From the NCBI GenBank assembly GCA_001643675.2, contig LSRY02000016.1, forward strand, positions 930,001 to 994,000: 64,000 nt of DNA, in the 5' to 3' direction. A model generated the notes under the pieces. The model was not told the DNA's origin and searched no databases. It saw nothing but the letters and a program-made list of their open reading frames with translations. Below, piece by piece: positions 25,301 to 43,141 of the stretch. Source of the DNA: Monocercomonoides exilis PA203 (Eukaryota; Protista; Preaxostyla). Position 1 is the stretch's first letter; every line of letters starts with the position of its first letter. The translations under genes and the position numbers were made by a program.

Positions 25301-28300
25301 AGCAGTGGAATCAATAATGTTTCTCCTTTTATCTCTCAAGTAACACAAAGCACTCGTTCATTGAATCCTTTCAAACCAAAAAAGAAGAAGAGCATGATTG
25401 ATTCCGTGTGCCCGTGGATTAAACATTTGCCTCGCTCGTCTGAAGAGCTGGCTGAATTGCGAGAGAAAGAAGGCAGTCTTTCAGTTGAGGATGTTGTCAA
25501 GTGGCTGTCGAGTGTTTATGACGAATGGGAACAGTATGAAAAAAGCAAAGCGCAAACAAGAATCTGCGAAGATGGCAAAAAGAATGAAGAATTTGAAGCG
25601 CCTTCTGCTCGAAGTGCTCCTCAACGGAGGCTGTCTCCTTCTTTGTTTCGTAGAACGCCTTCACCTTCTGCCAGAACAAGAAACTCGTCCTCTCCTTCTT
25701 CTCCTTCTCGTTCAAATTCGTTTTCATCAACTTCGTCATCACTATCTTCTTCCTCTTCCTCTTCCTCTTTGAATCTTCTTTCGAACACATCTTCATCTGA
25801 ATATCTTGATTGCCCTGTTTTTTATTCCTCTTTTTCGTCTTCGCAGTTTTTGCATAGTTTCCATTCGCATCTTTTTACAGTTCAACAGCCATTTGCTCTC
25901 AACCAACCTTCAAATTCGTTGCAATCTTCTGCTTCAAAACTACAATTGGCTAATATTTCTCAAACATCTGCAGGAGATTCCCAGCGATCTATGTTATCTT
26001 CTTCTTCTTCTTCTTCTTCTTCTTCTTCTTCTTCTTCTTTGCCTTCATCATCAATAACAACTTCTTTTTCTTCTTCTTCTGGTATCTCATCAACTCTCCG
26101 CAGAGGAAACCAGCGTGTTGCTGCTGCAACAATCATTCCATTGCTTTATCCTGCTGCTTCTCTTTTCTCGTCTTCTCTTTCTCTTCTTTTGGAACTCGAG
26201 TCATTTTCTGTAAAAACTCTGTCAGATTCAAGCAAAAAACATTGCGCATTGAAGAAAATGAATGACAAATCAAGTGAAAAGTCGGAATATAAATTAACTG
26301 ATAAACAGGGGAAATCATCAAATGCTGATGAAAGCACAATCAATTTTCAAAAGGGTAACACAAATCAATGCGAAATGCCACTGTTTTTCTCCTTGGATTC
26401 AATTTTCCCTCTTTCTCCTTTCCAGTTCTTCATCGACGTTTTGCATCTGTCTCTTTCTTTGCTTCCTGTTCTTCCCTCTGCATCTCTTTTGCTTTTATCT
26501 GATATTTCACTCATTCTCAATGCAGCCGAGGAACACACACGCTCAAGATCTGATGATCAATTTCCAATTTCATCTGCATTTTTTTCTCCTTCTTCAATTT
26601 CAAATGCACATTGCAATTCTTCATATTCAGTTGGTTTGCAACCTCCTCAATTGCCTTCTCTTCCTCCTTCTTCTCGTGCTCCTTCTGTCACATCTGTTGC
26701 GTTATTTGAACAGCTTTCTGTTCAAAAGTCATCTGACTCTGTTGAAGCAGCTTCATCTCCTTATCATCTCAGTCAAGCAATTCATTCATCGATGTTCGTT
26801 CTCGTTTCTTTGGTTGTTCGAACTTGGATTTCTTTTGTTCTGACAGATTTTGTTGATCTCACTGCTTCTTCTTCTTCTTCTTCTTCTTCTTCTTCTTCTT
26901 CTTCTTCTTCTTCTTCTTCTTCTCCTTCTTCTTCTTTGTTTAATTCTTCTTCTTCTTCTTCTTCTTCTTCTTCTTCTTCTTCTTCTTCTTCTTCTTCTTC
27001 TTCTTCTTCTTCTTCTTCTTCTTCATCTTCATCTTCTTATCGATCTACGTCCAATCAAACATTAAATTCTAATTCTTCTTCCCATCATTTTAGTTCATCC
27101 TTCAATTTTATTGACACTCCAGTACGAACAGAAACCACAATAGCACTTTCTCAACTATCCTCCCTAATTTATTCACTTTCTGCTTTCTCTTCATCTTCAT
27201 TGCTTTCTTCCCCTCTTTCTTCTCCTGTTCAGTCTGCCATTTCTGCTCCAAAATGCAAAGTTCAGACACCAAAACGGGGGAAATTCAACAATTCCCTTCA
27301 TTTTGTGTCTCCTTCTTTGACTCCGTTTGTGTCATCTTCCATCACATCGCTGCTTTCTGCATTAAATTCGTATATTCAGCAGTCAATTTGTGCTTCGGCT
27401 GTTCTGTTTTTTGAAGATGCAATTAACTTTCACACTGAAAATGATGAAGAAAATGAAACAATTCTTGCAAAACAGCTAACTTCTTCAGAACAACAGATCA
27501 GAAAAAGATTTGCTTTACCATCAAATTTTGAAATATCAACACTTGAAAGCTCTTTGCGTTCAATGGATCTGTCTGAATTTTCGCAATTTGTGCACATTTC
27601 CTCTCCTCTCTTTGTTGCCTCAAAGAAAGCAATGGAAATGTCAGAACTTGCAATGAAACTTCGTTCCTCTTTTCCTTTTAGCAATTACTCTAAAAAGAGT
27701 TCTGATGAACAAGAAATTTGCTCTTGTAAGAGTTCGAAGGGAACAGCTGCAATTAACAGTTGTGATCAAACAACATCTAATTCTGTTTCGTGTCATTCAG
27801 TTGATGAACCTGAAAGCCAGAGAAGCATAGAAGACAGTTCTTTAACATCAAAAGCTGAAGATTCGTCTGAAGCTGAGACAAATAAATTTAATAGCCCAAT
27901 CGAAAACAAGATACAAGAAGCAGTGCACTCGCTTCAAAAGATGATTGAATGCATTTGCAAAGAAAGCTGTCCTTCTTATTCATCTTCTTCCCATTCATCA
28001 GCATTGGATTCTCATTTTTTGGAGCCTAAACAGAAATCCTGCCTCGAATTGTTTGTTCGCTTCTGTGATTCAACTTACGTGCTCAAGGATTCTGATTGTA
28101 AATCTCAGTTTTGTGAGCCTAGCATCAAATATAAGCTTCAAGCGATGCTTCTTCCTGATGATTCGGTCACTCATTCAAACAATGATCAAGCTCATTTGGC
28201 ATCTTCTGTTTCTTCTTTGTTCTTTGTTTTGTCGCCTTTTCTTTCCAACAGTCATTTGTGTTGCATTCTGCAACTTGCTTGCCTTGTATTGATGCTTCTT

Positions 28301-29836
28301 TGCCATTCTTATGAAGAACAATATTTAACAGAAGATTCTCTGAAAATTTTACTTGAAGATGCGTTTTCTTCTGCTTCTCAATTCATTAGCAGCTGTTCTT
28401 CTTGCTTTGGTTATTTTTCGAGCTCGACATATTTGATTTCAGAAATAGCATCTTTATCGAAGATTTGCATACAACAAAGCAAAAGTTGTGCTGCATTTTT
28501 CTTCAATTCATTGGGAGTAAAGGAGCATAAGTCTGGTTCATCTTTGCCTTCGACTCCATCTTCTTCATCGTTATCTTCTTCTTTTCGCCATTCTTTTTCT
28601 TGTTCAGATCTTTCATCCCGTCATCCGCCTCCTCCACCACCACCTCCTCCTCCGCCTCCACCTCCTCCTCCGCCTCCACCTCCTCCGCCTTCAACTCCTC
28701 CTCCTCCTCCATTGTACAATTACAAGTCAACATCATCTTCTCCAATCTCTTCTTCTGCTTCTTCTGTTTCTTTCGAATCAAAAAGCCTTCCATTGTCAAG
28801 TTTCCAGTTATCCTCAATGTTCTATTTCTTGTCGCTGCATCATGTTTTGTCTTCACTTGTGTTCAATTCAACTCTTCCTGTTTCTCCTCTTTTCTTCAAC
28901 GAAGATTATGTGAATTCGTCGTTGTATCCAAAAATACAAAGCTTTCAGAATTGTAACCTTGCTTCTTTTGAAGAGTTATTTTCTTCTCATTCTCCTTTAC
29001 AAATGTTCTCAACCAGAAAATCGAGAATCTCTTATGCCTCAACAGCATGTTCATCATCATCATCATCGTCTTCTTCTTTGTTATCTTCGTCTTCTTTTAC
29101 AACTGAAAGTGGCAAAAATTCTGTATCCAGCAATTCATCTTCTTCATTTAATTCCAGAGTTCAATTGTCTAAAGCCAATGGAAATAATTCCATTATTTCA
29201 CAAGTTAACCGTAAAAGTTGTGCAAATAGTTGCACAAGTTGTCAAACGCATTCTCTTATTTTGTCGCTTTCTCCAAGAATTTCTTCTCTTTCGCCATTTT
29301 CGCAGCTGCTCGCTTTTTATCCTTCGCCTAGTTTTCTGATTTCCAGCCCATGTGTTCGTGTTGGCGTTGATGCAATTCCTCATTCTTTGTATTCTTTTTT
29401 GTCTTTTCAGTCTGAAAAGCTGAGCAAATCTATCCATGTCTTGCACTCTCCCAAAAAGATGAGCCCTCTGCATACAGGTTCTCCTTCTTTTCCTCAATTT
29501 TCCTCTTGTTCAGTTTCTTATCAAAATCAATTGTTACGAAAGAATCAAGAAGAAATTGAGGAGTCCACGAATATTTCACAAAGAAACAGCGATGTTGCTG
29601 TGCTTCCACCAACATTCTTGCCTTCTTGTTCTCACTGCACAAATAACTTCACAGAGGTTGACAAGACGCTTTCCACTTTTCCGTTTTCTGTAGCATTTTC
29701 ATTATCTCTTACCAATTTCTACCAACCTTGTCTGAATCCTGCATTTTTTGCATCTAACGAAAGGGAGAATGTGTTCTTCTTTTTGGTATTGCTGTATTGT
29801 CTTTTAAAGAAATATAAATGTTATATGATATTATAA
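19361..29836 (+). CDS. Giant Ser-rich HEAT/ARM-like alpha-solenoid protein (~3490 aa), candidate huntingtin-like; 3' end probably truncated or reading into an intron
   Basis: Single 10.5-kb ORF. HEAT-like helices (INCSDASVRIAVLSILPQIL; LTAHSSAMIASSALNVLSAYF; APDPLIRSSAAFCASHLIRLIL; LVQLHSQRQQVFSATINSF) are separated by Ser-rich inserts. A possible extra first exon starts at ATG 19236 and splices (donor 19349 or 19358) to AG 19398. The last 21 codons (from 29771, GTGTTC...) are AT/T-rich and intron-like. Confidence 0.75.
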   Translation: MNRLILLHTKSIRNSVSQLEVKQKQSTVKAILYNLRILSSWLQFTTRKLLTYPIFTALLTEITGAINCSDASVRIAVLSILPQILEQTPEEFKIDTVSLIFSITAHYPPRVRDLSFRICFPLGISVSKSSQFVVQNSLTSVLQEEIICKTAKENSILQFFASPLVLHHLSERFAQNSAFTFSDLNFAIISSLPSSSHEDGCCISKIFAAFSERSRDSVKLYHISKIISLLLSVWISKENEFNRSDLPELSSRSNLLSLTLDCFSMLENLLLSNLSTDSNMQSKSGSGFWNPSDYWLFSKKFNETSKDGKADHVLQDFYESYYEDKSDHESITEIGLKSLPNSNICNLVAVLQTILEAFLKKQKDGKCPKTHSIPTESLSTEEKTGTEVDDDNKPSNLIPSTAVVLRSLQLLLALLHFWYQHRSITFDDVQCSRNEKMKETIKSQEPRCSNSSDFSTRQVISSDVSNTALIPQIPIHFKETASSSLSVSTNSSDCFLPPQKRNHTTFSQLRQSTSKRKGKSLSIQTTESLPIQPMLQTGSHFITVPLLSSVLSLTAHSSAMIASSALNVLSAYFMSFNTLHSFHSLPFQISYKQPSQKSSTSQHYTSFLDHLLQLLSSFSSTTTSSSSPSTSRIKHKDFQIGISSESSRQENSKISCTEEIQHSSFNSLRDLDNVILTVNSSNAKFHESFIQFVERLNSVVCTKKCINKELNSQVVLEQESDVIKTNNIEADSINSAPDPLIRSSAAFCASHLIRLILSFISLAFKEEQQKISCQVDSAKKLHSSSSSSFSSKMSSFIPFESLHVFLRPFVSNQTTFQTEKDERQSKNSFISLSLLFHIIISAFVTETSQQKEKEKDEENVQTSASSFSSMKHPLSSPLVVSFSRDEDEKESAMKYEEIDPFLNALHSFEDSSVSKSTQDVSFSKNETVIPSSNSSNFSNSLISSSSSCSSLLLSPFSSLSSSTSPPLRAIIIAIHSIHHFCSIISPPLPFHFKEIDNLASKGRSFRCSTDILKQFEGSQTLVHNTSCSMNSDLSSIALNSTSASSNSTSSQIDSTFPSNLTFLSSLSLSLSFCSTFLYRLFLCQVFHPTSSLLPPSALNVLQHLSFGSVANVMDASEKWMECVTNRQITMMKDEVSKDGSEKCRSKELDLSTEISRMTDKSPKVSAPIHDSISSSMMCSNKTSSSSFIKTFLEMFLKAFLVQLHSQRQQVFSATINSFTPFVMHMVMAMKQFEKSSRFENERNFIEAKNEPRNENCRNKSDLSACNIYEENRNNAQNKQMNDYAMHSSVSCSLLSSDSSQRDFNQSTIFVRVLLMTLATAGLKGNVDPYVLSLIHKTCTNEQTFYGAAKTSSEKQITSSFSEMLSFSLHPSTCIMLLRSFLQNTSSMKFVICQKVFNLIHDKCMTQINLKSTKSIESNESTKSEITSNQIQNNSMELLEYLTTLLHMLFLNMTTSYSFSSFSDNQSSQKMCYHALVDMLISLSLIVSLIQQTVKQPRFYSIFESLYQQSVKQQAETDSTNKANLKNEEICPTNSSSPLLRQLLLKTLSDIILFSLDLLFLLQYYLIPQIPNYSQSTSFSLFNLSNAHSVKSDLNLSYQASSSRPSFQLRQICKKELRRQKRAKREERERERQNREKRRVLRRLKLERERELRKEGNIPYESEPNTADSEEEEPSSSSSDSFEMISEAMDEKEEYEEADFCSETFPYPSSLIEDDTAFLDLLCSFLPSFPSLTQSAQKSIRPSNSSASGAFPLSSSPSPSPSPSYSPLSSPAPTSSPASANAINGSTSSTSQTSPVSSSLSSSSSSSSSFSSSQSTFELILSNISLISISSLRWILKVILHSSFISAEAKEEQRIFQLCNRKSNSKKREFGKGLFEENTEFELERKEVDDKSERTDSNPQLISEQLTTMPIEESTKKHTFESLQYSYSNLIGSFGSSHKHHKDDFIPKLSLTPTAPPSVDLLLSALFSSDSLSSSSSVISSSSGINNVSPFISQVTQSTRSLNPFKPKKKKSMIDSVCPWIKHLPRSSEELAELREKEGSLSVEDVVKWLSSVYDEWEQYEKSKAQTRICEDGKKNEEFEAPSARSAPQRRLSPSLFRRTPSPSARTRNSSSPSSPSRSNSFSSTSSSLSSSSSSSSLNLLSNTSSSEYLDCPVFYSSFSSSQFLHSFHSHLFTVQQPFALNQPSNSLQSSASKLQLANISQTSAGDSQRSMLSSSSSSSSSSSSSSLPSSSITTSFSSSSGISSTLRRGNQRVAAATIIPLLYPAASLFSSSLSLLLELESFSVKTLSDSSKKHCALKKMNDKSSEKSEYKLTDKQGKSSNADESTINFQKGNTNQCEMPLFFSLDSIFPLSPFQFFIDVLHLSLSLLPVLPSASLLLLSDISLILNAAEEHTRSRSDDQFPISSAFFSPSSISNAHCNSSYSVGLQPPQLPSLPPSSRAPSVTSVALFEQLSVQKSSDSVEAASSPYHLSQAIHSSMFVLVSLVVRTWISFVLTDFVDLTASSSSSSSSSSSSSSSSSSSPSSSLFNSSSSSSSSSSSSSSSSSSSSSSSSSSSSSSSYRSTSNQTLNSNSSSHHFSSSFNFIDTPVRTETTIALSQLSSLIYSLSAFSSSSLLSSPLSSPVQSAISAPKCKVQTPKRGKFNNSLHFVSPSLTPFVSSSITSLLSALNSYIQQSICASAVLFFEDAINFHTENDEENETILAKQLTSSEQQIRKRFALPSNFEISTLESSLRSMDLSEFSQFVHISSPLFVASKKAMEMSELAMKLRSSFPFSNYSKKSSDEQEICSCKSSKGTAAINSCDQTTSNSVSCHSVDEPESQRSIEDSSLTSKAEDSSEAETNKFNSPIENKIQEAVHSLQKMIECICKESCPSYSSSSHSSALDSHFLEPKQKSCLELFVRFCDSTYVLKDSDCKSQFCEPSIKYKLQAMLLPDDSVTHSNNDQAHLASSVSSLFFVLSPFLSNSHLCCILQLACLVLMLLCHSYEEQYLTEDSLKILLEDAFSSASQFISSCSSCFGYFSSSTYLISEIASLSKICIQQSKSCAAFFFNSLGVKEHKSGSSLPSTPSSSSLSSSFRHSFSCSDLSSRHPPPPPPPPPPPPPPPPPPPPPPSTPPPPPLYNYKSTSSSPISSSASSVSFESKSLPLSSFQLSSMFYFLSLHHVLSSLVFNSTLPVSPLFFNEDYVNSSLYPKIQSFQNCNLASFEELFSSHSPLQMFSTRKSRISYASTACSSSSSSSSSLLSSSSFTTESGKNSVSSNSSSSFNSRVQLSKANGNNSIISQVNRKSCANSCTSCQTHSLILSLSPRISSLSPFSQLLAFYPSPSFLISSPCVRVGVDAIPHSLYSFLSFQSEKLSKSIHVLHSPKKMSPLHTGSPSFPQFSSCSVSYQNQLLRKNQEEIEESTNISQRNSDVAVLPPTFLPSCSHCTNNFTEVDKTLSTFPFSVAFSLSLTNFYQPCLNPAFFASNERENVFFFLVLLYCLLKKYKCYMIL
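26867..27037 (+). repeat. (TCT)n trinucleotide tract encoding poly-Ser
   Basis: Interrupted TCT run inside the 19361-29836 ORF; a shorter run lies at ~25998-26038. Confidence 0.95.
28625..28711 (+). repeat. CCN tract encoding poly-Pro
   Basis: CCG/CCT/CCA codon run (long P run, ST, then PPPPP) in the 3491-aa ORF. Confidence 0.9.
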
Positions 29837-30448
29837 TTTTTAACTTTTTAACTTGTTTGATAATAATTGTTAGTAAGTGGAGTTGATCCTATTTTCAATG
29901 TGATCCTACCCACTATTTTTATCATTTTCATTTAAAAAACGCTTCTAGAGTTAACCCTAACGCTAATTTTGCTCAACAAAACCCTAGGCCAACTCTAAAT
30001 CCAATATGAACTTGTTTTCTTCGCTATAACCCCAAAACCTAATAAACACAGCAAGAATGAATCACAATATTTTAATAATTAAGGGCAGTCATCATGTTGG
30101 AACCAGGATCTTCTCCATTTGCCGAGTAATTGATTCGAGTTTTGTATTTTTTTGATGTATTTTTAAATGTTTTTTTTTCAAGTGATTTGGTGCCATTAAA
30201 GAAAAGTGCCAATAAAAAAATGACCCTATTTGAAAATTGAGAACTAAAATTGAATTGAGTAGATTTTTTTTTTAAACCCCTTGAAACACGCATCCAAGCC
30301 GCAACAATGCGCAAGCGAGCAACCAGGCAGATTTCGAGCGTATGAAGATTACCATAATAATGTTTGCGGAGAGTGCGAATTAGAAGTTGGATCGTCTGAT
30401 TTAAACTTTTTCGTGTTTTTTTCGGAGAAATTGGAAAAAAGAAATCGG

Positions 30449-33400
30449 ATGGAAAACGAATGCAAAAACGCATCTGAACTCAAGAATATGACAAAAAAGA
30501 GTAAAAATGAAAAGGAGGTGACTGGTTGTGGAAGCGGAGAATCGGGGAAATCGGAGGCAAAGAAGCGGCCGAAGAACTACGAGGAGCGGAGCAACTTCCT
30601 GGCGAACTTTGTGTTCCTGTTCTTCTTCCGGTATGTGTTCCGGAGGCAGCCGATCATGGATGAGGATGTGTGCGAGATTGCGGAGGCGAACTCGACAGAG
30701 GTGAACTGCCCGAAGGTGAAGCAGAAGTGGGAGGCGCGATATCAGGCATATGTGGCGGAGCTGGCGGCATACAGCGCAGAGAAGGAGGAGTGTGAGCGGG
30801 AGGGGAGAGTGCTGCGGAGGAAGGCGCCAGCACGCCCGTCAGTGGTGTGGATGCTTGTGTCGCTGGGTGGGTGGCGTGTGTGGGTGTCGCAGGTGCTGAT
30901 GGCGCTGAGTGCCGGGCCGAAGCTTCTGGGTCCGTTCCTGCTGCGGTGGCTGCTGGAGGCGTTGGCAGTGAAGGAGGCGAACGATGCGGCGGGGCTGAAG
31001 ACGCCGTTCCCGGGGTGGGTGGTGGCAGGGCTGATTGTGACGCCGCTACTCACAGGGTTGTGCGAGTCGAACGGGTTCCGGTTCATCATCAACACGGCGG
31101 GACAGATCCGGACAGGGATCAGCGGGATGATCTACGACAAGACGCTGCACCTGAATATCGCGGCTCAGACGAAGATGGATGTGGGGAAGCTGGTGGCGCT
31201 GATTTCGACAGACACACAGAACGTGACGGAGTCGCTGATGGATGTGCTTGGTGTAGTGCAGTATCCGGTGCTGCTGGTAGGGACACTTGTGCTGCTGGTC
31301 ATGGAGATCAGGTACTACACAGCAATCGCAGTGGTGCTGGTGGTATTGATCTTCCCGGTACAGGGGGTTATCGCAGGGCAGATGTTTAAGAGGTACAGTC
31401 TGTATCTGGAGGCAAACGAGGAGCGGCTGAAGGCTACGAACGAGATGGTGCAAGGGATGCGCGTGGTGAAGCTGAGTGGGCTGGAGTCCGTGTTTCTGGA
31501 GCGGATTGGAAAGGCACGGCAGATGCAGCTGGGGCACTCGGCGCACTTTGTGTTTGCGCTGCAGATGATGTACTCGTCGATGTCGGCGTTTTCGATGCTT
31601 CTGCAGACGATTGTGCTGGTGGCATATCTGAAGGGGGAGGGGATCGCGGAGGCAGAAGTGGTGCACCACTTCTACCAGATTGGGAGCATCCTGGGGCTGT
31701 TCACGTATGCGGCGACGTCGCTGCCGATGGTTATGCAGTCGGGGACGCAGCTGGTAGCGTCGGCGCATCGGATTGCGGAGTTTTTGCTGATTGAGGAAAG
31801 GGAGGAGTATGTGGAGGAGATTACAGAAAGAGACGAAGAAGAGGAGAATGATACAAAGGAACATGCAGTGATCATCAGGAATGGGATGTTCAAGTGGCTG
31901 GACCCTCCAGCAATTCCGCTAATGAACGAAGAGAAGGAACAGATGGAGGAGAAGCGGGTGAAGGCACAGAGAGAGAAAGCAGAGGTGAAGAAGAGGGAGA
32001 AGAAGGGGAAAGAGATGGAAAAGAAAGAGAAAGAAGAAAAGTCTTCGTTATCTTCTGACTCGAGCGAAGGAACAGGCAAGATAGAGGGAGACGAGAATAA
32101 GAAGAGTGGAAGAGAGGGGAAGGGCTGTTCGAATGTGGTGCTGAGGGACATAAACCTGAAAGTGAGGAAAGGGGAGCTTGTGTTTGTGGTTGGGGCGGTA
32201 GGAAGCGGGAAGTCCTCGCTTCTGGCAGCGATGAGCGGGGACATTGCAAAGGCTGATGAGCTGGAGGAAGATGGGAAAGAGAAAGATGAAAAGGGGAGAA
32301 AAAAGAAGACAGAAGTGAAGGTGAGAGGGAGGGTGGTGGCGTTTTCGCAGACGCCGTGGATCTTCAACGGGACATGCAAGGAGAATATCGTATTTGAGGG
32401 AGCGATGGACGAAGAAAAGTACAGGGAGTGTGTGTCGGCGTGCTGCCTGGAGGCAGACTTTGGAGTGCTGGGGGCAGGAGACGAGACGGCGATAGGGGAG
32501 CGGGGAATCAACCTGAGCGGAGGACAGAAGGCGCGGCTGCAGCTGGCGCGGTGTGTGTACAGCGGGGCGGAGGTGGTGCTGTTGGACGATCCTTTGTCAG
32601 CGGTGGATGCACATGTGGGGAAGCGGCTGTTTGAGGAGTGCATTGTGGGGCTGCTGAAGGAGCGGCGCGGAGCTACCGTGGTTCTGGCGACGAACCAGGT
32701 GCAGTATGCTGACCAGGCAGACACGGTGGTTGTGATGGAAGGAGGAAGGATTGTGGCACAGGGGACGAAGAAGGTGCTGGAGGAGAAGGGGATTGACCTG
32801 ATGCGGCTGACGAGGAAGTGGAGGAAGGACGGGAAAGAGAAAGAGAAAGAGAAAGAGAAAGAGAAAGAGAAAGAGAAAGAGAAAGAGAAAGAGAAAGAGA
32901 AAGAGAAAGAGAAAGAGAAAGAGAAAGAGAAAGAGAAAGAGAAAGAGAAAGAGAAAGAGAAAGAGGAGAAAAAGGAAACCGAGAAAAATGAGAAAAAGGA
33001 AGATGAAGTGATGGAAGTGATGGAGTCGATCACAGAGAAAGAGGCGGAGATTCATTCAATAGAAAAGTCAACAGATAAGGCAGTTGAGATTCATTCACCT
33101 TCATCTTCATCTTCTCCAATGGTTTCACCAACGCACACAGAGGAGCAACTGGCATCAGGCACAAGCACACCAGCAAGTGTGGCAGAGATTGAGGCGAAAG
33201 CAGAGAAAAAGGCGGCGATGCAGATGATAACGGAGGAGGAGCAGATGGTGTCGAGTGTGTCATGGAGGATCTATGTGGACTATCTGGGGAAGCTGGGGAG
33301 TCCAGTGGCGGTGGGGTGCTATCTGGTGCTGCTGGTGGTGTGCGAGGGGGTGAACACGCTGAATACGTACTGGATGAACGTCGTGAGCACACCGGAGCTG

Positions 33401-35212
33401 CTTGCAGGGTTAGGGTTTGACTGGAAGCTGGGGATGATGGGGGTGGTGGCCGGGGTGTTCCTGGGGCTGGTGGTTGTGCGAGCTTGGGTGTTTACGTTGT
33501 TCACTCGGCGGGCGAACGGGAAGATCCACGACGAGCTGGCAGCGCATGTGGCAGGGTGTCCGCCGGTGTTCTTCGACACGACGCCGGTAGGGCGGATTCT
33601 GAACCGGTTCAGCAGTGACATCACGAAGACAGACACAGACCTACCGACGACGTTCACGTATCTGCTGCAGACGTGGCTGCAGGTGGTGGGGACGTGTGTG
33701 GTGGGGGCGATCGACTGGCCGTACTTCCTGTTGTTTGTGGTGGGGGTGCTGGGGCTGCTGCATGTGATTGTAGTGGTGTACCCGCGGACGTCGCGGAACC
33801 TGACGCGGCTGGAGGGTATCACACGGAGCCCGGTGATAGCGCAATTCACAGAGACTGTGACGGGAGCGGGGCTGAGCACAATCCGTCTGGGGAGGCGGGA
33901 GGGGGTATGGGAGCGGCAGTTCGCACAGAAGGTGGATGAATGGGGGTCAGCGTTTGTGCTGGTGCGGGAGGGGCTGCAGTGGGCGAACTTGATGATCCAG
34001 GGGATTTGCTGTGTGTTCACGGTGGGGGTGACTGTTCTGGGGTGGCACTTTATGCGGGCATCGAGCGTGGGGCTGGCGGTGTCGGCATCGAACAACCTGG
34101 GGTGGCAGGGGACGATGCTGGTGACGATGGGGGTGCTTGTGGAGTCGACAATGACAAACCTGGAGCGAATCCGGTTCTACTCGACGCGGCTGCCGCAGGA
34201 GACGAAGCGAGTGGAGGTGGAACCTGTACCGAGCTGGCCGAGCGAAGGGGAGGTGTCGTTTGAGGATGTGTCGTTCAGGTACCGGCCGGGGTTGCCGCTG
34301 GTGCTGAAGAACGTGTCGTTTAGGATCAAAGGAGGGGAGAAGATCGGGGTGTGTGGGCGGACAGGGGCAGGAAAGACGAGTCTTGTGCAGGCACTGTTCC
34401 GGCTGGTTGAGCTGGATCCAGAGCTGATGCCGCAGCTGATCGATGTGGAAACCGGGCTACCTGTGGAGAAGCAGAGTCAGTCGTCATCTGCTCCGCACTC
34501 AAGTTGTAGCTCTTGTTATGGTTCGTCATTGGAGCTGATGGAAGAAGGAGGTTACGTTGGAGAGGAAGAGAAGGAGGAGCAGAACAGCGGGCGAATTGTG
34601 ATCGACGGAGTGGACATCTCGAAGGTGGAGCTGGGGCGGCTGAGGAGGTCTATCGCGATCATCCCGCAAGACCCGACGCTGTTTGAGGGGACAGTGCGGA
34701 TGAACTTGGATTTGGGAGGAAAGCGGAGCGATGAGCGGCTGTGGGCAGTGCTGGATCAGGTGGAGATGGGGGACATGGTGCGGGGGATGGAGGGCGGGCT
34801 GGAGGGGCATGTGGCAGAGGGCGGGGCGAACCTGAGCTGCGGGCAGCGGCAGCTGCTGTGCCTGGTGCGGGCGATCGTGAACGAGTGCAAGATAGTGGTG
34901 ATGGATGAGGCAACTGCGAATGTGGATGCAGAGACAGACAGCAAGATCCAGCAGACAATCCGGACATCGTTTGCAGGGCAGACGGCGATCATCATTGCGC
35001 ATCGGCTGAACACGATTGTGGGGTGCGACCGGATCCTGGTGATGGACAAGGGGGAGGCAAAGGAGCTGGACACGCCGCAGGCGCTGATAAAAGACCCGAA
35101 GTCGCTGTTCTCGCAGTTGCTAGCACACTCGGGGCTGGGCAGCAAAGGGACGAGTTGTGCGATTGAGTGTGAGGCAGGCAATTTGGAGGAGAAAAAGGAA
35201 CATGAAGATTAG
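30449..35212 (+). CDS. ABC transporter subfamily C (MRP-like, short form without TMD0), 1587 aa, intronless
   Basis: First in-frame ATG at 30449 (the track starts at TTG 30281). TMD1-NBD1-TMD2-NBD2 layout. NBD1: GAVGSGKS, IGERGINLSGGQKAR, VVLLDDPLSAVDAHVG. TMD2: FFDTTPVGRILNRFSSD. NBD2: GRTGAGKT, IIPQDP, LSCGQRQ, IVVMDEATANVD, IAHRL. Confidence 0.95.
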   Translation: MENECKNASELKNMTKKSKNEKEVTGCGSGESGKSEAKKRPKNYEERSNFLANFVFLFFFRYVFRRQPIMDEDVCEIAEANSTEVNCPKVKQKWEARYQAYVAELAAYSAEKEECEREGRVLRRKAPARPSVVWMLVSLGGWRVWVSQVLMALSAGPKLLGPFLLRWLLEALAVKEANDAAGLKTPFPGWVVAGLIVTPLLTGLCESNGFRFIINTAGQIRTGISGMIYDKTLHLNIAAQTKMDVGKLVALISTDTQNVTESLMDVLGVVQYPVLLVGTLVLLVMEIRYYTAIAVVLVVLIFPVQGVIAGQMFKRYSLYLEANEERLKATNEMVQGMRVVKLSGLESVFLERIGKARQMQLGHSAHFVFALQMMYSSMSAFSMLLQTIVLVAYLKGEGIAEAEVVHHFYQIGSILGLFTYAATSLPMVMQSGTQLVASAHRIAEFLLIEEREEYVEEITERDEEEENDTKEHAVIIRNGMFKWLDPPAIPLMNEEKEQMEEKRVKAQREKAEVKKREKKGKEMEKKEKEEKSSLSSDSSEGTGKIEGDENKKSGREGKGCSNVVLRDINLKVRKGELVFVVGAVGSGKSSLLAAMSGDIAKADELEEDGKEKDEKGRKKKTEVKVRGRVVAFSQTPWIFNGTCKENIVFEGAMDEEKYRECVSACCLEADFGVLGAGDETAIGERGINLSGGQKARLQLARCVYSGAEVVLLDDPLSAVDAHVGKRLFEECIVGLLKERRGATVVLATNQVQYADQADTVVVMEGGRIVAQGTKKVLEEKGIDLMRLTRKWRKDGKEKEKEKEKEKEKEKEKEKEKEKEKEKEKEKEKEKEKEKEKEKEEKKETEKNEKKEDEVMEVMESITEKEAEIHSIEKSTDKAVEIHSPSSSSSPMVSPTHTEEQLASGTSTPASVAEIEAKAEKKAAMQMITEEEQMVSSVSWRIYVDYLGKLGSPVAVGCYLVLLVVCEGVNTLNTYWMNVVSTPELLAGLGFDWKLGMMGVVAGVFLGLVVVRAWVFTLFTRRANGKIHDELAAHVAGCPPVFFDTTPVGRILNRFSSDITKTDTDLPTTFTYLLQTWLQVVGTCVVGAIDWPYFLLFVVGVLGLLHVIVVVYPRTSRNLTRLEGITRSPVIAQFTETVTGAGLSTIRLGRREGVWERQFAQKVDEWGSAFVLVREGLQWANLMIQGICCVFTVGVTVLGWHFMRASSVGLAVSASNNLGWQGTMLVTMGVLVESTMTNLERIRFYSTRLPQETKRVEVEPVPSWPSEGEVSFEDVSFRYRPGLPLVLKNVSFRIKGGEKIGVCGRTGAGKTSLVQALFRLVELDPELMPQLIDVETGLPVEKQSQSSSAPHSSCSSCYGSSLELMEEGGYVGEEEKEEQNSGRIVIDGVDISKVELGRLRRSIAIIPQDPTLFEGTVRMNLDLGGKRSDERLWAVLDQVEMGDMVRGMEGGLEGHVAEGGANLSCGQRQLLCLVRAIVNECKIVVMDEATANVDAETDSKIQQTIRTSFAGQTAIIIAHRLNTIVGCDRILVMDKGEAKELDTPQALIKDPKSLFSQLLAHSGLGSKGTSCAIECEAGNLEEKKEHED
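32834..32965 (+). repeat. (AAAGAG)22 encoding (KE)22 in the ABCC NBD1-TMD2 linker
   Basis: 132-nt perfect hexamer run; the mirror copy at 39523-39648 has 21 units. Confidence 0.95.
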
Positions 35213-35709
35213 AGGGAATAAAACAGAAAATGGGGTAAGAGAGATGCTTTGTTTGGAAGGTAAAGGCAGAAAGTGTGTTGGAAAGAGAAGCATTGAAGAG
35301 GGATAATGAGAATGGAAGCTGACAGAGTGGAACAGAGAAAGGGGAGGCAGAGGCAGCGAGTGACTGTTCTGAGATTTGCGAACTGTCAAATATAAGTCAT
35401 TGATTTCGATTTATTATATTTTCTTTGCTGTCAGTTTCTATTTATATGTTTATATTAATATATATATACATACATTATTAAGACTTTTTGGTTTGGTTTT
35501 TTTGCTTTTGCTTTTGCTTTTGATTGGTTGCGTTGCGAAACTTTATTTTTCTATTTATTTATTATTTTTATGAATACGTAGCAGCAACTGTTGTGCCTCA
35601 TTTCCTTGGTCACTTGTCTTCATTGGAGAAGAACGGGTGATGCAAGACTGTGATATATAGTGAGTGCAAAACTCGATCCTGCTAAATACTTCTAATTTTG
35701 AAAAAATAA

Positions 35710-36778
35710 TAGGGTGGATTTTTTATCCGGACATTTTTTTTTATCCGGACAAAAAATTTAAAATTTAAATATCTCAACAAATATTCAATATTAATTTCCA
35801 GCAATTTGCACAGTTGTATGTTAGCATATATGACATCGATTCATATACAAAATTTTCATAGCAGTGTTGTATTTTTTTGAAATAAATAATTTTTATTTTT
35901 GAAAATCCGACTTTTGATGAATTTTTCTATTGAAATAAAATGATTCAATTTATCCTATATGCATAAAACTTATTTTTTCCATGATATTAACAATTCTGGT
36001 TATTTTTAATTTTCCACAATTTGCTCTTTCTAACGGAATGAAAATCTATCATTTTTGAAAAATCATTGTCAATGGGACAACTTAAAAAATATTTTTCATT
36101 AAATGCAGGAGCATCTAACTAAAACCAACACTTGCATTATTTAATATAATAGTTATAAAAAATTACCACTACATTATATTTAATAATTATTCAGTAGGGA
36201 TTTCATAAATGTTATCTGTTTTGACAAATAATGATATTTTTTTATATTCAACTTCATTGAAATTCAAATAATATTTATTTTTTGGAATCATCACTGAATC
36301 ATTTTTAAATATAATGTAGTGGTAATTTTTTATAACTATTATATTAAATAATGCAAGTGTTGGTTTTAGTTAGATGCTCCTGCATTTAATGAAAAATATT
36401 TTTTAAGTTGTCCCATTGACAATGATTTTTCAAAAATGATAGATTTTCATTCCGTTAGAAAGAGCAAATTGTGGAAAATTAAAAATAACCAGAATTGTTA
36501 ATATCATGGAAAAAATAAGTTTTATGCATATAGGATAAATTGAATCATTTTATTTCAATAGAAAAATTCATCAAAAGTCGGATTTTCAAAAATAAAAATT
36601 ATTTATTTCAAAAAAATACAACACTGCTATGAAAATTTTGTATATGAATCGATGTCATATATGCTAACATACAACTGTGCAAATTGCTGGAAATTAATAT
36701 TGAATATTTGTTGAGATATTTAAATTTTAAATTTTTTGTCCGGATAAAAAAAAATGTCCGGATAAAAAATCCACCCTA
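35710..36778. mobile_element. Putative MITE/fold-back non-autonomous element at the palindrome axis
   Basis: Starts TAGGGTGGATTTTTTATCCGGACA and ends with its inverse (...CCACCCTA). Subterminal direct repeat TTTTTATCCGGACA x2, very AT-rich, no ORF. The central 121 nt is imperfectly self-complementary. Boundaries are inferred from motif style because the flanks are mirrored anyway. Confidence 0.5.
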
Positions 36779-39700
36779 TTATTTTTTCAAAATTAGAAGT
36801 ATTTAGCAGGATCGAGTTTTGCACTCACTATATATCACAGTCTTGCATCACCCGTTCTTCTCCAATGAAGACAAGTGACCAAGGAAATGAGGCACAACAG
36901 TTGCTGCTACGTATTCATAAAAATAATAAATAAATAGAAAAATAAAGTTTCGCAACGCAACCAATCAAAAGCAAAAGCAAAAGCAAAAAAACCAAACCAA
37001 AAAGTCTTAATAATGTATGTATATATATATTAATATAAACATATAAATAGAAACTGACAGCAAAGAAAATATAATAAATCGAAATCAATGACTTATATTT
37101 GACAGTTCGCAAATCTCAGAACAGTCACTCGCTGCCTCTGCCTCCCCTTTCTCTGTTCCACTCTGTCAGCTTCCATTCTCATTATCCCTCTTCAATGCTT
37201 CTCTTTCCAACACACTTTCTGCCTTTACCTTCCAAACAAAGCATCTCTCTTACCCCATTTTCTGTTTTATTCCCTCTAATCTTCATGTTCCTTTTTCTCC
37301 TCCAAATTGCCTGCCTCACACTCAATCGCACAACTCGTCCCTTTGCTGCCCAGCCCCGAGTGTGCTAGCAACTGCGAGAACAGCGACTTCGGGTCTTTTA
37401 TCAGCGCCTGCGGCGTGTCCAGCTCCTTTGCCTCCCCCTTGTCCATCACCAGGATCCGGTCGCACCCCACAATCGTGTTCAGCCGATGCGCAATGATGAT
37501 CGCCGTCTGCCCTGCAAACGATGTCCGGATTGTCTGCTGGATCTTGCTGTCTGTCTCTGCATCCACATTCGCAGTTGCCTCATCCATCACCACTATCTTG
37601 CACTCGTTCACGATCGCCCGCACCAGGCACAGCAGCTGCCGCTGCCCGCAGCTCAGGTTCGCCCCGCCCTCTGCCACATGCCCCTCCAGCCCGCCCTCCA
37701 TCCCCCGCACCATGTCCCCCATCTCCACCTGATCCAGCACTGCCCACAGCCGCTCATCGCTCCGCTTTCCTCCCAAATCCAAGTTCATCCGCACTGTCCC
37801 CTCAAACAGCGTCGGGTCTTGCGGGATGATCGCGATAGACCTCCTCAGCCGCCCCAGCTCCACCTTCGAGATGTCCACTCCGTCGATCACAATTCGCCCG
37901 CTGTTCTGCTCCTCCTTCTCTTCCTCTCCAACGTAACCTCCTTCTTCCATCAGCTCCAATGACGAACCATAACAAGAGCTACAACTTGAGTGCGGAGCAG
38001 ATGACGACTGACTCTGCTTCTCCACAGGTAGCCCGGTTTCCACATCGATCAGCTGCGGCATCAGCTCTGGATCCAGCTCAACCAGCCGGAACAGTGCCTG
38101 CACAAGACTCGTCTTTCCTGCCCCTGTCCGCCCACACACCCCGATCTTCTCCCCTCCTTTGATCCTAAACGACACGTTCTTCAGCACCAGCGGCAACCCC
38201 GGCCGGTACCTGAACGACACATCCTCAAACGACACCTCCCCTTCGCTCGGCCAGCTCGGTACAGGTTCCACCTCCACTCGCTTCGTCTCCTGCGGCAGCC
38301 GCGTCGAGTAGAACCGGATTCGCTCCAGGTTTGTCATTGTCGACTCCACAAGCACCCCCATCGTCACCAGCATCGTCCCCTGCCACCCCAGGTTGTTCGA
38401 TGCCGACACCGCCAGCCCCACGCTCGATGCCCGCATAAAGTGCCACCCCAGAACAGTCACCCCCACCGTGAACACACAGCAAATCCCCTGGATCATCAAG
38501 TTCGCCCACTGCAGCCCCTCCCGCACCAGCACAAACGCTGACCCCCATTCATCCACCTTCTGTGCGAACTGCCGCTCCCATACCCCCTCCCGCCTCCCCA
38601 GACGGATTGTGCTCAGCCCCGCTCCCGTCACAGTCTCTGTGAATTGCGCTATCACCGGGCTCCGTGTGATACCCTCCAGCCGCGTCAGGTTCCGCGACGT
38701 CCGCGGGTACACCACTACAATCACATGCAGCAGCCCCAGCACCCCCACCACAAACAACAGGAAGTACGGCCAGTCGATCGCCCCCACCACACACGTCCCC
38801 ACCACCTGCAGCCACGTCTGCAGCAGATACGTGAACGTCGTCGGTAGGTCTGTGTCTGTCTTCGTGATGTCACTGCTGAACCGGTTCAGAATCCGCCCTA
38901 CCGGCGTCGTGTCGAAGAACACCGGCGGACACCCTGCCACATGCGCTGCCAGCTCGTCGTGGATCTTCCCGTTCGCCCGCCGAGTGAACAACGTAAACAC
39001 CCAAGCTCGCACAACCACCAGCCCCAGGAACACCCCGGCCACCACCCCCATCATCCCCAGCTTCCAGTCAAACCCTAACCCTGCAAGCAGCTCCGGTGTG
39101 CTCACGACGTTCATCCAGTACGTATTCAGCGTGTTCACCCCCTCGCACACCACCAGCAGCACCAGATAGCACCCCACCGCCACTGGACTCCCCAGCTTCC
39201 CCAGATAGTCCACATAGATCCTCCATGACACACTCGACACCATCTGCTCCTCCTCCGTTATCATCTGCATCGCCGCCTTTTTCTCTGCTTTCGCCTCAAT
39301 CTCTGCCACACTTGCTGGTGTGCTTGTGCCTGATGCCAGTTGCTCCTCTGTGTGCGTTGGTGAAACCATTGGAGAAGATGAAGATGAAGGTGAATGAATC
39401 TCAACTGCCTTATCTGTTGACTTTTCTATTGAATGAATCTCCGCCTCTTTCTCTGTGATCGACTCCATCACTTCCATCACTTCATCTTCCTTTTTCTCAT
39501 TTTTCTCGGTTTCCTTTTTCTCCTCTTTCTCTTTCTCTTTCTCTTTCTCTTTCTCTTTCTCTTTCTCTTTCTCTTTCTCTTTCTCTTTCTCTTTCTCTTT
39601 CTCTTTCTCTTTCTCTTTCTCTTTCTCTTTCTCTTTCTCTTTCTCTTTCCCGTCCTTCCTCCACTTCCTCGTCAGCCGCATCAGGTCAATCCCCTTCTCC

Positions 39701-42616
39701 TCCAGCACCTTCTTCGTCCCCTGTGCCACAATCCTTCCTCCTTCCATCACAACCACCGTGTCTGCCTGGTCAGCATACTGCACCTGGTTCGTCGCCAGAA
39801 CCACGGTAGCTCCGCGCCGCTCCTTCAGCAGCCCCACAATGCACTCCTCAAACAGCCGCTTCCCCACATGTGCATCCACCGCTGACAAAGGATCGTCCAA
39901 CAGCACCACCTCCGCCCCGCTGTACACACACCGCGCCAGCTGCAGCCGCGCCTTCTGTCCTCCGCTCAGGTTGATTCCCCGCTCCCCTATCGCCGTCTCG
40001 TCTCCTGCCCCCAGCACTCCAAAGTCTGCCTCCAGGCAGCACGCCGACACACACTCCCTGTACTTTTCTTCGTCCATCGCTCCCTCAAATACGATATTCT
40101 CCTTGCATGTCCCGTTGAAGATCCACGGCGTCTGCGAAAACGCCACCACCCTCCCTCTCACCTTCACTTCTGTCTTCTTTTTTCTCCCCTTTTCATCTTT
40201 CTCTTTCCCATCTTCCTCCAGCTCATCAGCCTTTGCAATGTCCCCGCTCATCGCTGCCAGAAGCGAGGACTTCCCGCTTCCTACCGCCCCAACCACAAAC
40301 ACAAGCTCCCCTTTCCTCACTTTCAGGTTTATGTCCCTCAGCACCACATTCGAACAGCCCTTCCCCTCTCTTCCACTCTTCTTATTCTCGTCTCCCTCTA
40401 TCTTGCCTGTTCCTTCGCTCGAGTCAGAAGATAACGAAGACTTTTCTTCTTTCTCTTTCTTTTCCATCTCTTTCCCCTTCTTCTCCCTCTTCTTCACCTC
40501 TGCTTTCTCTCTCTGTGCCTTCACCCGCTTCTCCTCCATCTGTTCCTTCTCTTCGTTCATTAGCGGAATTGCTGGAGGGTCCAGCCACTTGAACATCCCA
40601 TTCCTGATGATCACTGCATGTTCCTTTGTATCATTCTCCTCTTCTTCGTCTCTTTCTGTAATCTCCTCCACATACTCCTCCCTTTCCTCAATCAGCAAAA
40701 ACTCCGCAATCCGATGCGCCGACGCTACCAGCTGCGTCCCCGACTGCATAACCATCGGCAGCGACGTCGCCGCATACGTGAACAGCCCCAGGATGCTCCC
40801 AATCTGGTAGAAGTGGTGCACCACTTCTGCCTCCGCGATCCCTCCCCCTTCAGATATGCCACCAGCACAATCGTCTGCAGAAGCATCGAAAACGCCGACA
40901 TCGACGAGTACATCATCTGCAGCGCAAACACAAAGTGCGCCGAGTGCCCCAGCTGCATCTGCCGTGCCTTTCCAATCCGCTCCAGAAACACGGACTCCAG
41001 CCCACTCAGCTTCACCACGCGCATCCCTTGCACCATCTCGTTCGTAGCCTTCAGCCGCTCCTCGTTTGCCTCCAGATACAGACTGTACCTCTTAAACATC
41101 TGCCCTGCGATAACCCCCTGTACCGGGAAGATCAATACCACCAGCACCACTGCGATTGCTGTGTAGTACCTGATCTCCATGACCAGCAGCACAAGTGTCC
41201 CTACCAGCAGCACCGGATACTGCACTACACCAAGCACATCCATCAGCGACTCCGTCACGTTCTGTGTGTCTGTCGAAATCAGCGCCACCAGCTTCCCCAC
41301 ATCCATCTTCGTCTGAGCCGCGATATTCAGGTGCAGCGTCTTGTCGTAGATCATCCCGCTGATCCCTGTCCGGATCTGTCCCGCCGTGTTGATGATGAAC
41401 CGGAACCCGTTCGACTCGCACAACCCTGTGAGTAGCGGCGTCACAATCAGCCCTGCCACCACCCACCCCGGGAACGGCGTCTTCAGCCCCGCCGCATCGT
41501 TCGCCTCCTTCACTGCCAACGCCTCCAGCAGCCACCGCAGCAGGAACGGACCCAGAAGCTTCGGCCCGGCACTCAGCGCCATCAGCACCTGCGACACCCA
41601 CACACGCCACCCACCCAGCGACACAAGCATCCACACCACTGACGGGCGTGCTGGCGCCTTCCTCCGCAGCACTCTCCCCTCCCGCTCACACTCCTCCTTC
41701 TCTGCGCTGTATGCCGCCAGCTCCGCCACATATGCCTGATATCGCGCCTCCCACTTCTGCTTCACCTTCGGGCAGTTCACCTCTGTCGAGTTCGCCTCCG
41801 CAATCTCGCACACATCCTCATCCATGATCGGCTGCCTCCGGAACACATACCGGAAGAAGAACAGGAACACAAAGTTCGCCAGGAAGTTGCTCCGCTCCTC
41901 GTAGTTCTTCGGCCGCTTCTTTGCCTCCGATTTCCCCGATTCTCCGCTTCCACAACCAGTCACCTCCTTTTCATTTTTACTCTTTTTTGTCATATTCTTG
42001 AGTTCAGATGCGTTTTTGCATTCGTTTTCCATCCGATTTCTTTTTTCCAATTTCTCCGAAAAAAACACGAAAAAGTTTAAATCAGACGATCCAACTTCTA
42101 ATTCGCACTCTCCGCAAACATTATTATGGTAATCTTCATACGCTCGAAATCTGCCTGGTTGCTCGCTTGCGCATTGTTGCGGCTTGGATGCGTGTTTCAA
42201 GGGGTTTAAAAAAAAAATCTACTCAATTCAATTTTAGTTCTCAATTTTCAAATAGGGTCATTTTTTTATTGGCACTTTTCTTTAATGGCACCAAATCACT
42301 TGAAAAAAAAACATTTAAAAATACATCAAAAAAATACAAAACTCGAATCAATTACTCGGCAAATGGAGAAGATCCTGGTTCCAACATGATGACTGCCCTT
42401 AATTATTAAAATATTGTGATTCATTCTTGCTGTGTTTATTAGGTTTTGGGGTTATAGCGAAGAAAACAAGTTCATATTGGATTTAGAGTTGGCCTAGGGT
42501 TTTGTTGAGCAAAATTAGCGTTAGGGTTAACTCTAGAAGCGTTTTTTAAATGAAAATGATAAAAATAGTGGGTAGGATCACATTTAAAATAGGATCAACT
42601 CCACTTGCTAACAATT
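36305..42616 (-). repeat. Right arm of 12.75-kb palindrome
   Basis: Reverse complement of 29865-36183; similarity ends at ...CCACTTGCTAACAATT|GTCAGAATC. Confidence 0.97.
37276..42032 (-). pseudogene. Second ABCC/MRP copy with a 1-nt frameshift (pseudogene or homopolymer sequencing error)
   Basis: Matches copy 1 except GAGGGATC vs GAGGGGATC at 40840-40842, which splits it into track ORFs 40725-42200 and 37276-40824, and one fewer KE unit. Confidence 0.85.
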
Positions 42617-42657
42617 GTCAGAATCGTATAAATCTTTATGAATTTGACAAATACATT

Positions 42658-43141
42658 TGGCAAGATGCTACTTTAAGGGTACCCGATTTTTTCGTTAAAT
42701 CCATGAATAAATAGCAAAAAAATGCAATGTAGAGATATTATAAGTATATTCGGTTTATAATAATCAATTGATCAAAACTGAAAATGATTGAATGGTTTTT
42801 TATTCAAATCTCAAGTTTTACGAGGCTTTTTTCAAACTTCACAAAAACTCTTTAATTGAGTTTCTTTCAACCCTAACAATTGCAAATAGCCCCTATAAAC
42901 AAATTATAAAACCTTGATATGTCTTTTTATTGTTAAAAAAACGATTTGTTGATAGTTTATTTTAATTATTTCTATTAGGGGACAGCTGTTTTTGAGAACG
43001 AAAACCCTAAAAAAGAAAAAAGATATATAAAGCATAAAGTCAACGCCAAAGAGTGTTGATGAAAGTTCAATTGGAAACAATTAGCCTTTTCATTAAGCTT
43101 ATTAAGAATTTTTTAGGTACCCTTAAAGTAGCCCTTTGCCA
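42658..43141. mobile_element. ~480-bp AT-rich element bounded by 26-bp imperfect inverted repeats
   Basis: TGGCAAGATGCTACTTTAAGGGTACC (42658-42683) vs GGTACCCTTAAAGTAGCCCTTTGCCA (43116-43141): 23/26 complementary. No ORF; contains CCCTAA-type boxes. Confidence 0.5.

Follow-up and report, generated by a model that had tools for sequence, protein, structure and literature searches.

A palindrome with a foldback element at its axis and an ABCC transporter gene in each arm in Monocercomonoides exilis

Long near-perfect palindromes are unstable in most organisms that have been studied. In the protist Monocercomonoides exilis PA203, one such palindrome is assembled within a 64,000-nt stretch of contig LSRY02000016.1 (positions 930,001 to 994,000 of the forward strand), which we refer to as the window. 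It appears to persist with a complete gene for an ABCC (MRP-type) transporter in each arm, in an organism from which non-homologous end joining (NHEJ) is reported missing. The locus raises a question: How did such a structure arise, and what keeps its arms alike? An initial annotation, made from the sequence alone, had proposed a repeat-seeded palindromic amplification of an efflux pump, either very recent or continuously homogenised, and possibly serving as a gene-dosage system. The reading at which we arrive is that of a real chromosomal inverted duplication, produced by copying seeded at a foldback transposable element and homogenised afterwards, in which the fixed two-copy state of the pump is a by-product of a common palindrome-forming repair route; to this reading, taken as a whole, we give about half of our confidence. 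If it holds, the locus offers a clean case from nature: seed, copied tract and second junction are all readable from the sequence. Positions below are those of the window, and genome-wide searches were made in the M. exilis PA203 Nanopore assembly (82.3 Mb in 101 contigs, N50 1,379,369 bp).

The palindrome and the element at its axis

We compared the arms by global alignment of the left arm with the reverse complement of the right arm (Table 1). Only two substitutions separate them, T/C at 29874 and C/A at 29896, both in the outermost 32 bp. Two further differences are in length: the G-run at 31639 has one G fewer in its counterpart near 40843, and the left arm alone has the GAAAGA unit at 32833-32838, so that the right arm is shorter by 7 nt. 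With four differences over a total span of 12.75 kb, the mirror symmetry of the arms is far beyond chance, and the alignment confirms the arms, centre and differences that the initial annotation had read by eye. An ungapped repeat search gives a spacing of 39 nt between the arms, which reflects extension into a quasi-palindromic centre; the gapped alignment gives 121 nt.

The outer ends of the palindrome are sharp, and the contig that surrounds it, 1.7 Mb long, runs on through both flanks. As had been noted at the outset, no direct target-site duplication in register was found at the outer ends. The left flank is unique, and the left arm begins 29 bp past the stop codon (at 29836) of an upstream open reading frame (ORF) of 3,491 aa, which indicates that the whole intergenic region was duplicated together with the gene. 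The proposal that unique DNA lies on both sides is borne out on the left and fails on the right, where the unique DNA amounts to 42 bp and is followed by a repeat, TE-C, with at least 40 copies. There is no third copy of the arm nearby, only two arms and one palindromic junction. We also searched the right flank for homology to the regions downstream of ABCC paralogues, as a guide to the ancestral order, and found none.

The symmetry axis of the palindrome coincides with the centre of a complete foldback miniature inverted-repeat transposable element (MITE), which is made up of the last ~470 bp of each arm and the 121-nt centre, and which is found 500 bp past the stop codon of each ABCC copy. 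Both termini of the element are present, with GGGTGG followed by a repeated TTTATCCGGAC motif, and no ORF of at least 100 aa was found in it. A genome search with one arm returned 235 candidates at first look, of which at least 20 were confirmed as inverted pairs, with TA at most termini. Fifteen other copies were examined; they span ~1.0-3.6 kb, the longer ones with extra DNA in the middle, and no duplicated flank was found in any of the 15. Both half-sequences of the 121-nt centre recur in other members of the family, in which arm identity ends at the homologous point, and the loop is thus, as judged by this comparison, the native asymmetric middle of the family. This recurrence rules out local decay as the source of the loop. 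The transition from perfect to imperfect symmetry at 36183/36305 was considered as the priming point and rejected, since the same transition is found family-wide. As a separate observation, one foldback copy (L016) has 10 extra bases in inverted orientation, common to both sides, beyond its termini.

Since the palindrome and a mobile inverted repeat that predates it share one axis, the simplest reading by far is seeding by the foldback MITE, and we conclude that the duplication most likely arose by fold-back copying from this element. The repeat-seeded origin put forward initially is thereby supported, given a complete element at the axis and other copies of it without a duplicated flank. In such a process, a break or stalled fork at the foldback MITE, or to the right of it, would allow the ~470-bp inverted arms to anneal within one strand; the 3' end would then copy back along its own strand through the gene, the upstream region and two small MITEs, 5.85 kb past the element, and a second template switch or homology-driven capture would connect the new end to the distal flank. 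We propose these two ways of closing the final join because M. exilis lacks NHEJ: the pathway is reported missing and homologous recombination kept (PMC6759080), and a search of the genome for the Ku domain gave no match. An Mre11 domain was found in the genome. A Pfam search for SAE2/CtIP gave no match either, but its controls were silent too, which makes it uninformative. Since their formation, the arms would have been kept identical by arm-to-arm gene conversion, as the pattern of differences suggests. In yeast, a break close to a natural inverted repeat can prime synthesis by folding back; after fill-in by Pol delta an inverted duplication results, and secondary events mediated by repeats complete it (PMC10622511).

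The two small MITEs at the outer end of each arm bear on another possible origin. MITE-A is hAT-like: the ~25-bp terminal inverted repeats (TIRs) of its family begin GGCAAGTGGAG, and other copies have clear 8-bp target duplications. At least 24 copies occur in the genome at 73-82% identity, and the terminus of the copy in the arm lies 7 bp inside the arm boundary. The internal sequence of the MITE-A family also contains telomere-like CCCTAA motifs. Its neighbour, MITE-B, is present in many copies at 86-89% identity and produces a ~20-fold depth spike in contigs from the sequencing runs. In maize, alternative Ac/Ds transposition generates inverted duplications that end at transposon termini, and if the outermost MITE-A copies had transposed in a sister-chromatid or reversed-end mode, the arm boundary would similarly be placed close to a terminus, as it is here. 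Yet the boundary is off the terminus, the outer ends lack an 8-bp duplication, and it is another element, of the TA type, that occupies the axis; moreover, a random breakpoint would come this near to a repeat end with a probability of ~7%, given an intergenic stretch of 610 bp with three repeat ends. We find this origin scarcely credible, and the nearness of a hAT-type terminus could at most hint at a break made by a transposase. Hardly any weight falls, likewise, on the converse order of events, in which the foldback element was inserted later into the central TA of an existing palindrome. The element is indeed TA-flanked and, TA being itself palindromic, the flanks would remain symmetric after such an insertion, but a perfect, spacer-free palindrome of 11.7 kb would have to be hit at its exact central dinucleotide.

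Finally, we asked whether a foldback target duplication at the start of the right flank could serve as a sign that the template switch had returned precisely. It was uninformative: the duplication is only TA, and the flank starts with GTCAG. On the same flank, the copies of TE-C are 77-86% identical, apart from one at 99% on contig 20 (1164192-1164673), which suggests recent mobility or a recent duplication.

Table 1. Features of the palindrome and its right flank, in window positions
Feature	Position	Strand	Size	Details
Left arm	29865-36183	+	6,319 bp	Repeat search and global arm alignment
Right arm	36305-42616	-	6,312 bp	Mirror image of left arm; repeat search and global arm alignment
Palindrome centre	36184-36304		121 nt	
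Foldback MITE, complete	35712-36776		1,065 bp	~470-bp inverted arms; TA on both sides
Left ABCC gene	30449-35212 (coding sequence)	+	1,587 aa	Intact, intronless
Right ABCC copy	37276-42032	-		Split in the assembly: ORFs 37276-40824 and 40725-42200
(GAAAGA)22 microsatellite	32833-32964	+		Encodes KE repeat; 21 units in right arm
MITE-A, hAT-like	29872-30123	+	~250 bp	Mirror copy 42358-42609
MITE-B, high-copy repeat	30124-30230	+	~107 bp	Mirror copy 42251-42357
Sole unique DNA adjoining right junction	42617-42658		42 bp	
TE-C repeat	42659-43140		~482 bp	At least 40 copies

The transporter gene in each arm

From the outside in, each arm consists of 7 bp of flank, MITE-A, MITE-B, the ABCC gene, 500 bp of downstream DNA and half of the foldback element. 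The protein encoded in the left arm has two transmembrane domains (TMD) and two nucleotide-binding domains (NBD) in the order TMD1-NBD1-TMD2-NBD2, with a linker that contains the KE repeat; in a Pfam search, each half matched ABC_tran, and ABC_membrane was found two times. The best solved relatives of this protein are ABCC3, MRP1, MRP4 and YCF1 (E ~1e-161), with ABCC2/5 and SUR also among the closest (range 1e-161 to 1e-144) and CFTR next (~1e-105). A degenerate NBD1, in which Asp stands where the catalytic Glu normally follows Walker B, combined with a canonical NBD2 is the hallmark of subfamily C. The gene has this pattern: Walker B reads LLDDPLSAVD in NBD1 and VMDEATANVD in NBD2, and each NBD also has Walker A and the signature motif. 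The domains and the closest solved relatives bear out the identity first assigned to the gene, with similarity closest to subfamily C and not to B or G, and they support a predicted ABCC (MRP-type) full transporter, presumably an efflux-type pump.

The right copy is split in the assembly by the difference in the G-run, which reads GGGGGAGGGG in the left arm and GGGGGAGGG in the right arm. The Logan contigs from sequencing runs cover 26900-32800 of the window, beside the microsatellite; these contigs are of Illumina type (X1), 454 type (X2) and Nanopore-like (X4). The short G-run alone is found in the Nanopore-derived contig, at full depth, while the Illumina and 454 contigs contain only the full G-run. 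This distribution points to a Nanopore miscall, and the authors of the assembly describe under-polishing of multi-copy regions relative to unique ones (PMC8767320). The frameshift in the right copy is most likely a systematic Nanopore error that was corrected in one arm only. Since it looks like a homopolymer error, both copies of the gene are probably intact, the microsatellite difference being in frame and altering only the length of the KE repeat. The right copy is thus probably mis-annotated as broken, owing to a polishing artefact, and analyses of ABCC copy number or expression in this model amitochondriate must allow for identical inverted copies. As a side observation, the ABCC genes (33440-35209 in the window, and paralogues) have a GC content at third codon positions (GC3) of 0.69-0.86, and the neighbouring genes and flanks have 27-40% GC.

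Near-identity of the arms: youth or homogenisation

The positions of the differences are informative about the history of the arms. Two substitutions fall in the outermost 32 bp and none in the other 6,287 bp, a distribution that has a chance of ~2.6e-5 under uniform mutation. In a comparison with the alignment of the MITE-A family, the base at 29874 is unusual in the left arm and the base at 29896 in the right arm. Each arm thus appears to have one derived change, which fits divergence after duplication better than errors made during the synthesis of one arm. An independent MITE-A already present in the right flank was considered as the source of these edge substitutions and rejected: the outer 32 bp of the two arms share many derived states, together with 7 bp of flank that does not belong to the element.

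A similar pattern was observed at another ABCC locus. The ABCC subfamily has eight close members in the genome, and an inverted pair on contig 43 (568374-578774 and 595429-605820) is arranged tail-to-tail, with 10.4-kb arms and a 16.65-kb spacer. Of the 43 substitutions between its arms, 41 fall within 230 bp of the inner edge and 2 within 12 bp of the outer edge; the ~10.1 kb between has none, so that edges diverged by 17-18% enclose a perfect interior. The inner 230-bp zone was tried as a MITE seed pair and rejected; it is unique DNA that matches only the partner arm. A repeat with at least 30 copies begins exactly at the inner boundary of the left arm of this pair. Both gene copies on contig 43 are broken into several ORFs by 24 indel events, which are probably unpolished Nanopore errors. 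A third inverted pair, on contig 28 (775363-782339 and 791079-798100), belongs to a more distant ABCC subfamily (~50% amino acid identity) and is arranged head-to-head; its 7-kb arms are 99.8% identical and lie 8.7 kb apart. This pair is a mosaic, with 10 of its 13 substitutions in one 590-bp patch. These two loci indicate that perfect arms need not be young arms.

The foldback family shows the same tendency within single elements. The arms of a given element are on average 98.7% alike, and identical in 6 of 15 elements, whereas arms from different elements are 88.7% alike. Older copies (L012, L023 and L024) keep two inner-arm variants, and other copies have the same variant on both arms; variants common to both arms must have been copied from arm to arm. 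A further hint comes from base composition: GC3 is 0.77 and 0.86 in the inverted-pair ABCC copies and 0.69 and 0.74 in single-copy paralogues, a direction that would fit biased conversion, with n = 4. Taken together, the edge substitutions, the pairs on contigs 43 and 28 and the concerted foldback arms speak less for extreme recency than for homogenisation from arm to arm that stops short of the outermost ~30 bp. Of the two ages proposed initially, a continuously homogenised palindrome thus fits better and a very recent one less well, and the evidence for homogenisation leaves the duplication itself undated.

Does the palindrome exist in the sequenced DNA as it was assembled? The assembly was made with Canu 1.8 from Nanopore reads (N50 8.9 kb), followed by Nanopolish and ten rounds of Pilon with PCR-free MiSeq data (PMC8767320). 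In the sequencing runs, the left outer junction is crossed without differences by Illumina-type and 454-type contigs. Nanopore-like contigs contain both alleles at 29896 at nearly equal depth (C at 38.4, A at 35.8, with a flank of ~30), and a shared contig starts exactly at 29897 with a depth of 71.8, ~2.3x that of the flank. In the Illumina run, the sole arm contig with a GC content matched to the flank (30135-30594) has 1.96x the flank depth.

Several points weigh against the reading of a real, homogenised, foldback-seeded duplication. The Illumina left-flank contig is unbranched through 29897, where the arms should merge; the A allele at 29896 was not found in Illumina-derived contigs; and the depth of the GC-rich arm contigs, relative to the flank, is only 1.04-1.4x with Illumina and 0.96-2.1x with 454. 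All of this support, moreover, comes from contigs rather than single reads and covers the left junction and the outer part of the arm. The polarity of the edge substitutions is a weak indicator, as the MITE family from which it is read is ~80%-diverged, and these substitutions could stem from error-prone template-switch synthesis or from a consensus error in the right arm. Finally, the classical fold-back pathway yields a dicentric chromosome that needs a second event, and no microhomology can be read at the second junction, for which the right flank as it was before the duplication would be needed. The discrepancy between the Illumina and Nanopore data, which come from the same sample, possibly reflects GC bias, simplification of the graph near the repeat-rich right flank, or a minority or subclonal structure. 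In the last of these cases, most cells would have a single ABCC copy, and the source of the second arm would be a subclone, one haplotype or molecules specific to the Nanopore data; a related possibility is an assembly artefact. The unbranched, single-allele Illumina contig and the modest depth of the GC-rich contigs speak for an artefact or minority structure, as does a Nanopore read N50 that is shorter than the palindrome. Fold-back chimeric reads, on the other hand, would run into an inverted left flank rather than join a different flank sharply within a 1.7-Mb contig. The two equal-depth edge alleles, the raised depth in Nanopore contigs and the doubled depth of the GC-matched Illumina piece all argue for two arms, and no alternative junction or haplotig was found within the assembly. 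A look-up by exact protein for an independent assembly gave no record, in a collection from which entries of this genome may be absent. Contigs of this kind demonstrate presence, not absence, and the inverted pairs on contigs 43 and 28, with their long unique spacers, cannot be artefacts of fold-back reads. We therefore judge an artefact or minority structure unlikely, and the palindrome probably exists as assembled in the sequenced DNA, though perhaps not as two full copies in every cell.

If the palindrome is real, its arms might be identical simply through youth, in a very recent fold-back duplication whose edge substitutions are errors of the second template switch or of the consensus. Synthesis with template switching by microhomology-mediated break-induced replication is error-prone, and both differing bases adjoin the junction; the 6.29-kb interior has no substitutions, and the remaining differences, both in length, belong to classes that mutate fast or are prone to error. 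Against this stand the derived bases, which apparently lie one on each arm and not both on one, and the left-arm alleles, which are confirmed by Illumina and 454 contigs. The perfect interior of the contig 43 pair, alongside its 17-18% diverged edges, and the concerted evolution of the foldback arms point the same way, and we consider youth alone an unlikely explanation of the identity.

Gene dosage and relation to known systems

The duplicated gene is predicted to encode a pump of the type that exports drugs or conjugates, and three ABCC loci in this genome lie in large inverted pairs of high identity. Is the palindrome, then, part of a dedicated gene-dosage system, or an adaptive amplification of an efflux pump like the MRPA amplicons of Leishmania? 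We regard this as very unlikely. There are at most two copies, which are chromosomal and run on into both flanks; neither a variable nor an extrachromosomal form was seen; and the RNA contigs have no coverage of the ABCC gene. The palindrome structure is not special to ABCC, and there is no baseline against which an enrichment of ABCC could be read. The amplification or dosage system suggested by the initial annotation is thus not supported. A broader version of the idea is that gene-carrying palindromes nucleated by MITEs form throughout the genome and continue to do so, that long-tract conversion keeps them perfect, and that ABCC genes were captured three times, giving a standing route to higher, sequence-protected pump dosage. 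We think this quite unlikely; if it were true, palindromes would raise the dosage of a pump in a gut commensal that is exposed to bacterial and host toxins.

The comparison with Leishmania and Tetrahymena that accompanied the dosage proposal holds for the principle of seeding and not for the rest. The Leishmania MRPA system (PMC4028189) resembles the locus described here in having an ABCC cargo, repeats that dictate the rearrangement and inverted copies. Leishmania amplicons, however, are extrachromosomal linear or circular molecules, multi-copy, stochastic and drug-selected (PMC4028189), whereas here there is one chromosomal palindrome with no dynamics seen, and none of the extrachromosomal, multi-copy or variable features of such amplicons was found. 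The locus is better compared with inverted duplications primed by fold-back, as has been described in Mre11/Sae2-deficient yeast cells (PMC10622511) and for constitutional inverted duplications in humans (PMC3907307). It shares with them a pre-existing inverted repeat at the axis, arms that run outward into formerly unique DNA, a short asymmetric centre that is kept, and the requirement for a second event to finish the chromosome. It differs in that the seed is a 1,065-bp transposon with 470-bp arms rather than a repeat of tens of bases, and in that the product is interstitial, with 6.3 kb per arm and both flanks kept. It is, in addition, a natural and apparently stable allele in an organism with NHEJ reported missing, not a product of a mutant or a tumour. 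Palindromic amplification in mammalian cells and the rDNA palindrome of Tetrahymena are of the same inverted-repeat-seeded kind. The locus is a well-resolved case of a known type of rearrangement, with a provisional copy number. In the open-access literature that we searched, no link between Monocercomonoides and palindromes was found.

Three other systems share part of this pattern. The ampliconic palindromes of primate sex chromosomes are kept by arm-to-arm gene conversion; like them, the palindrome described here has gene-bearing arms that are more than 99.9% alike, a short spacer, divergence at the boundaries and a pattern that suggests concerted evolution. Unlike them, it is 10 to 1,000 times smaller and has a transposon at its axis, and the signs of conversion come from within one genome. 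Foldback and long-TIR MITEs include the FB elements of Drosophila and Stowaway-like MITEs flanked by TA. The central element resembles these in being non-coding, with very long TIRs, TA flanks and many dispersed copies, and differs in that its arms evolve in concert within each copy and in that no autonomous partner was identified. Origin-dependent inverted-repeat amplification (PMC4689423, PMC10766183) is likewise interstitial, seeded by short inverted repeats at a fork and free of sequence loss, but it predicts an inverted triplication with two inverted junctions, and two copies with one palindromic junction were found here.

A further palindrome was encountered on contig 80 (1624925-1634000 and beyond) by way of two MITE-A matches with identical flanks. 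It extends over at least 9.1 kb at 98.7% identity, with a spacer of ~76 nt at ~1629462, and its centre lies outside the foldback family.

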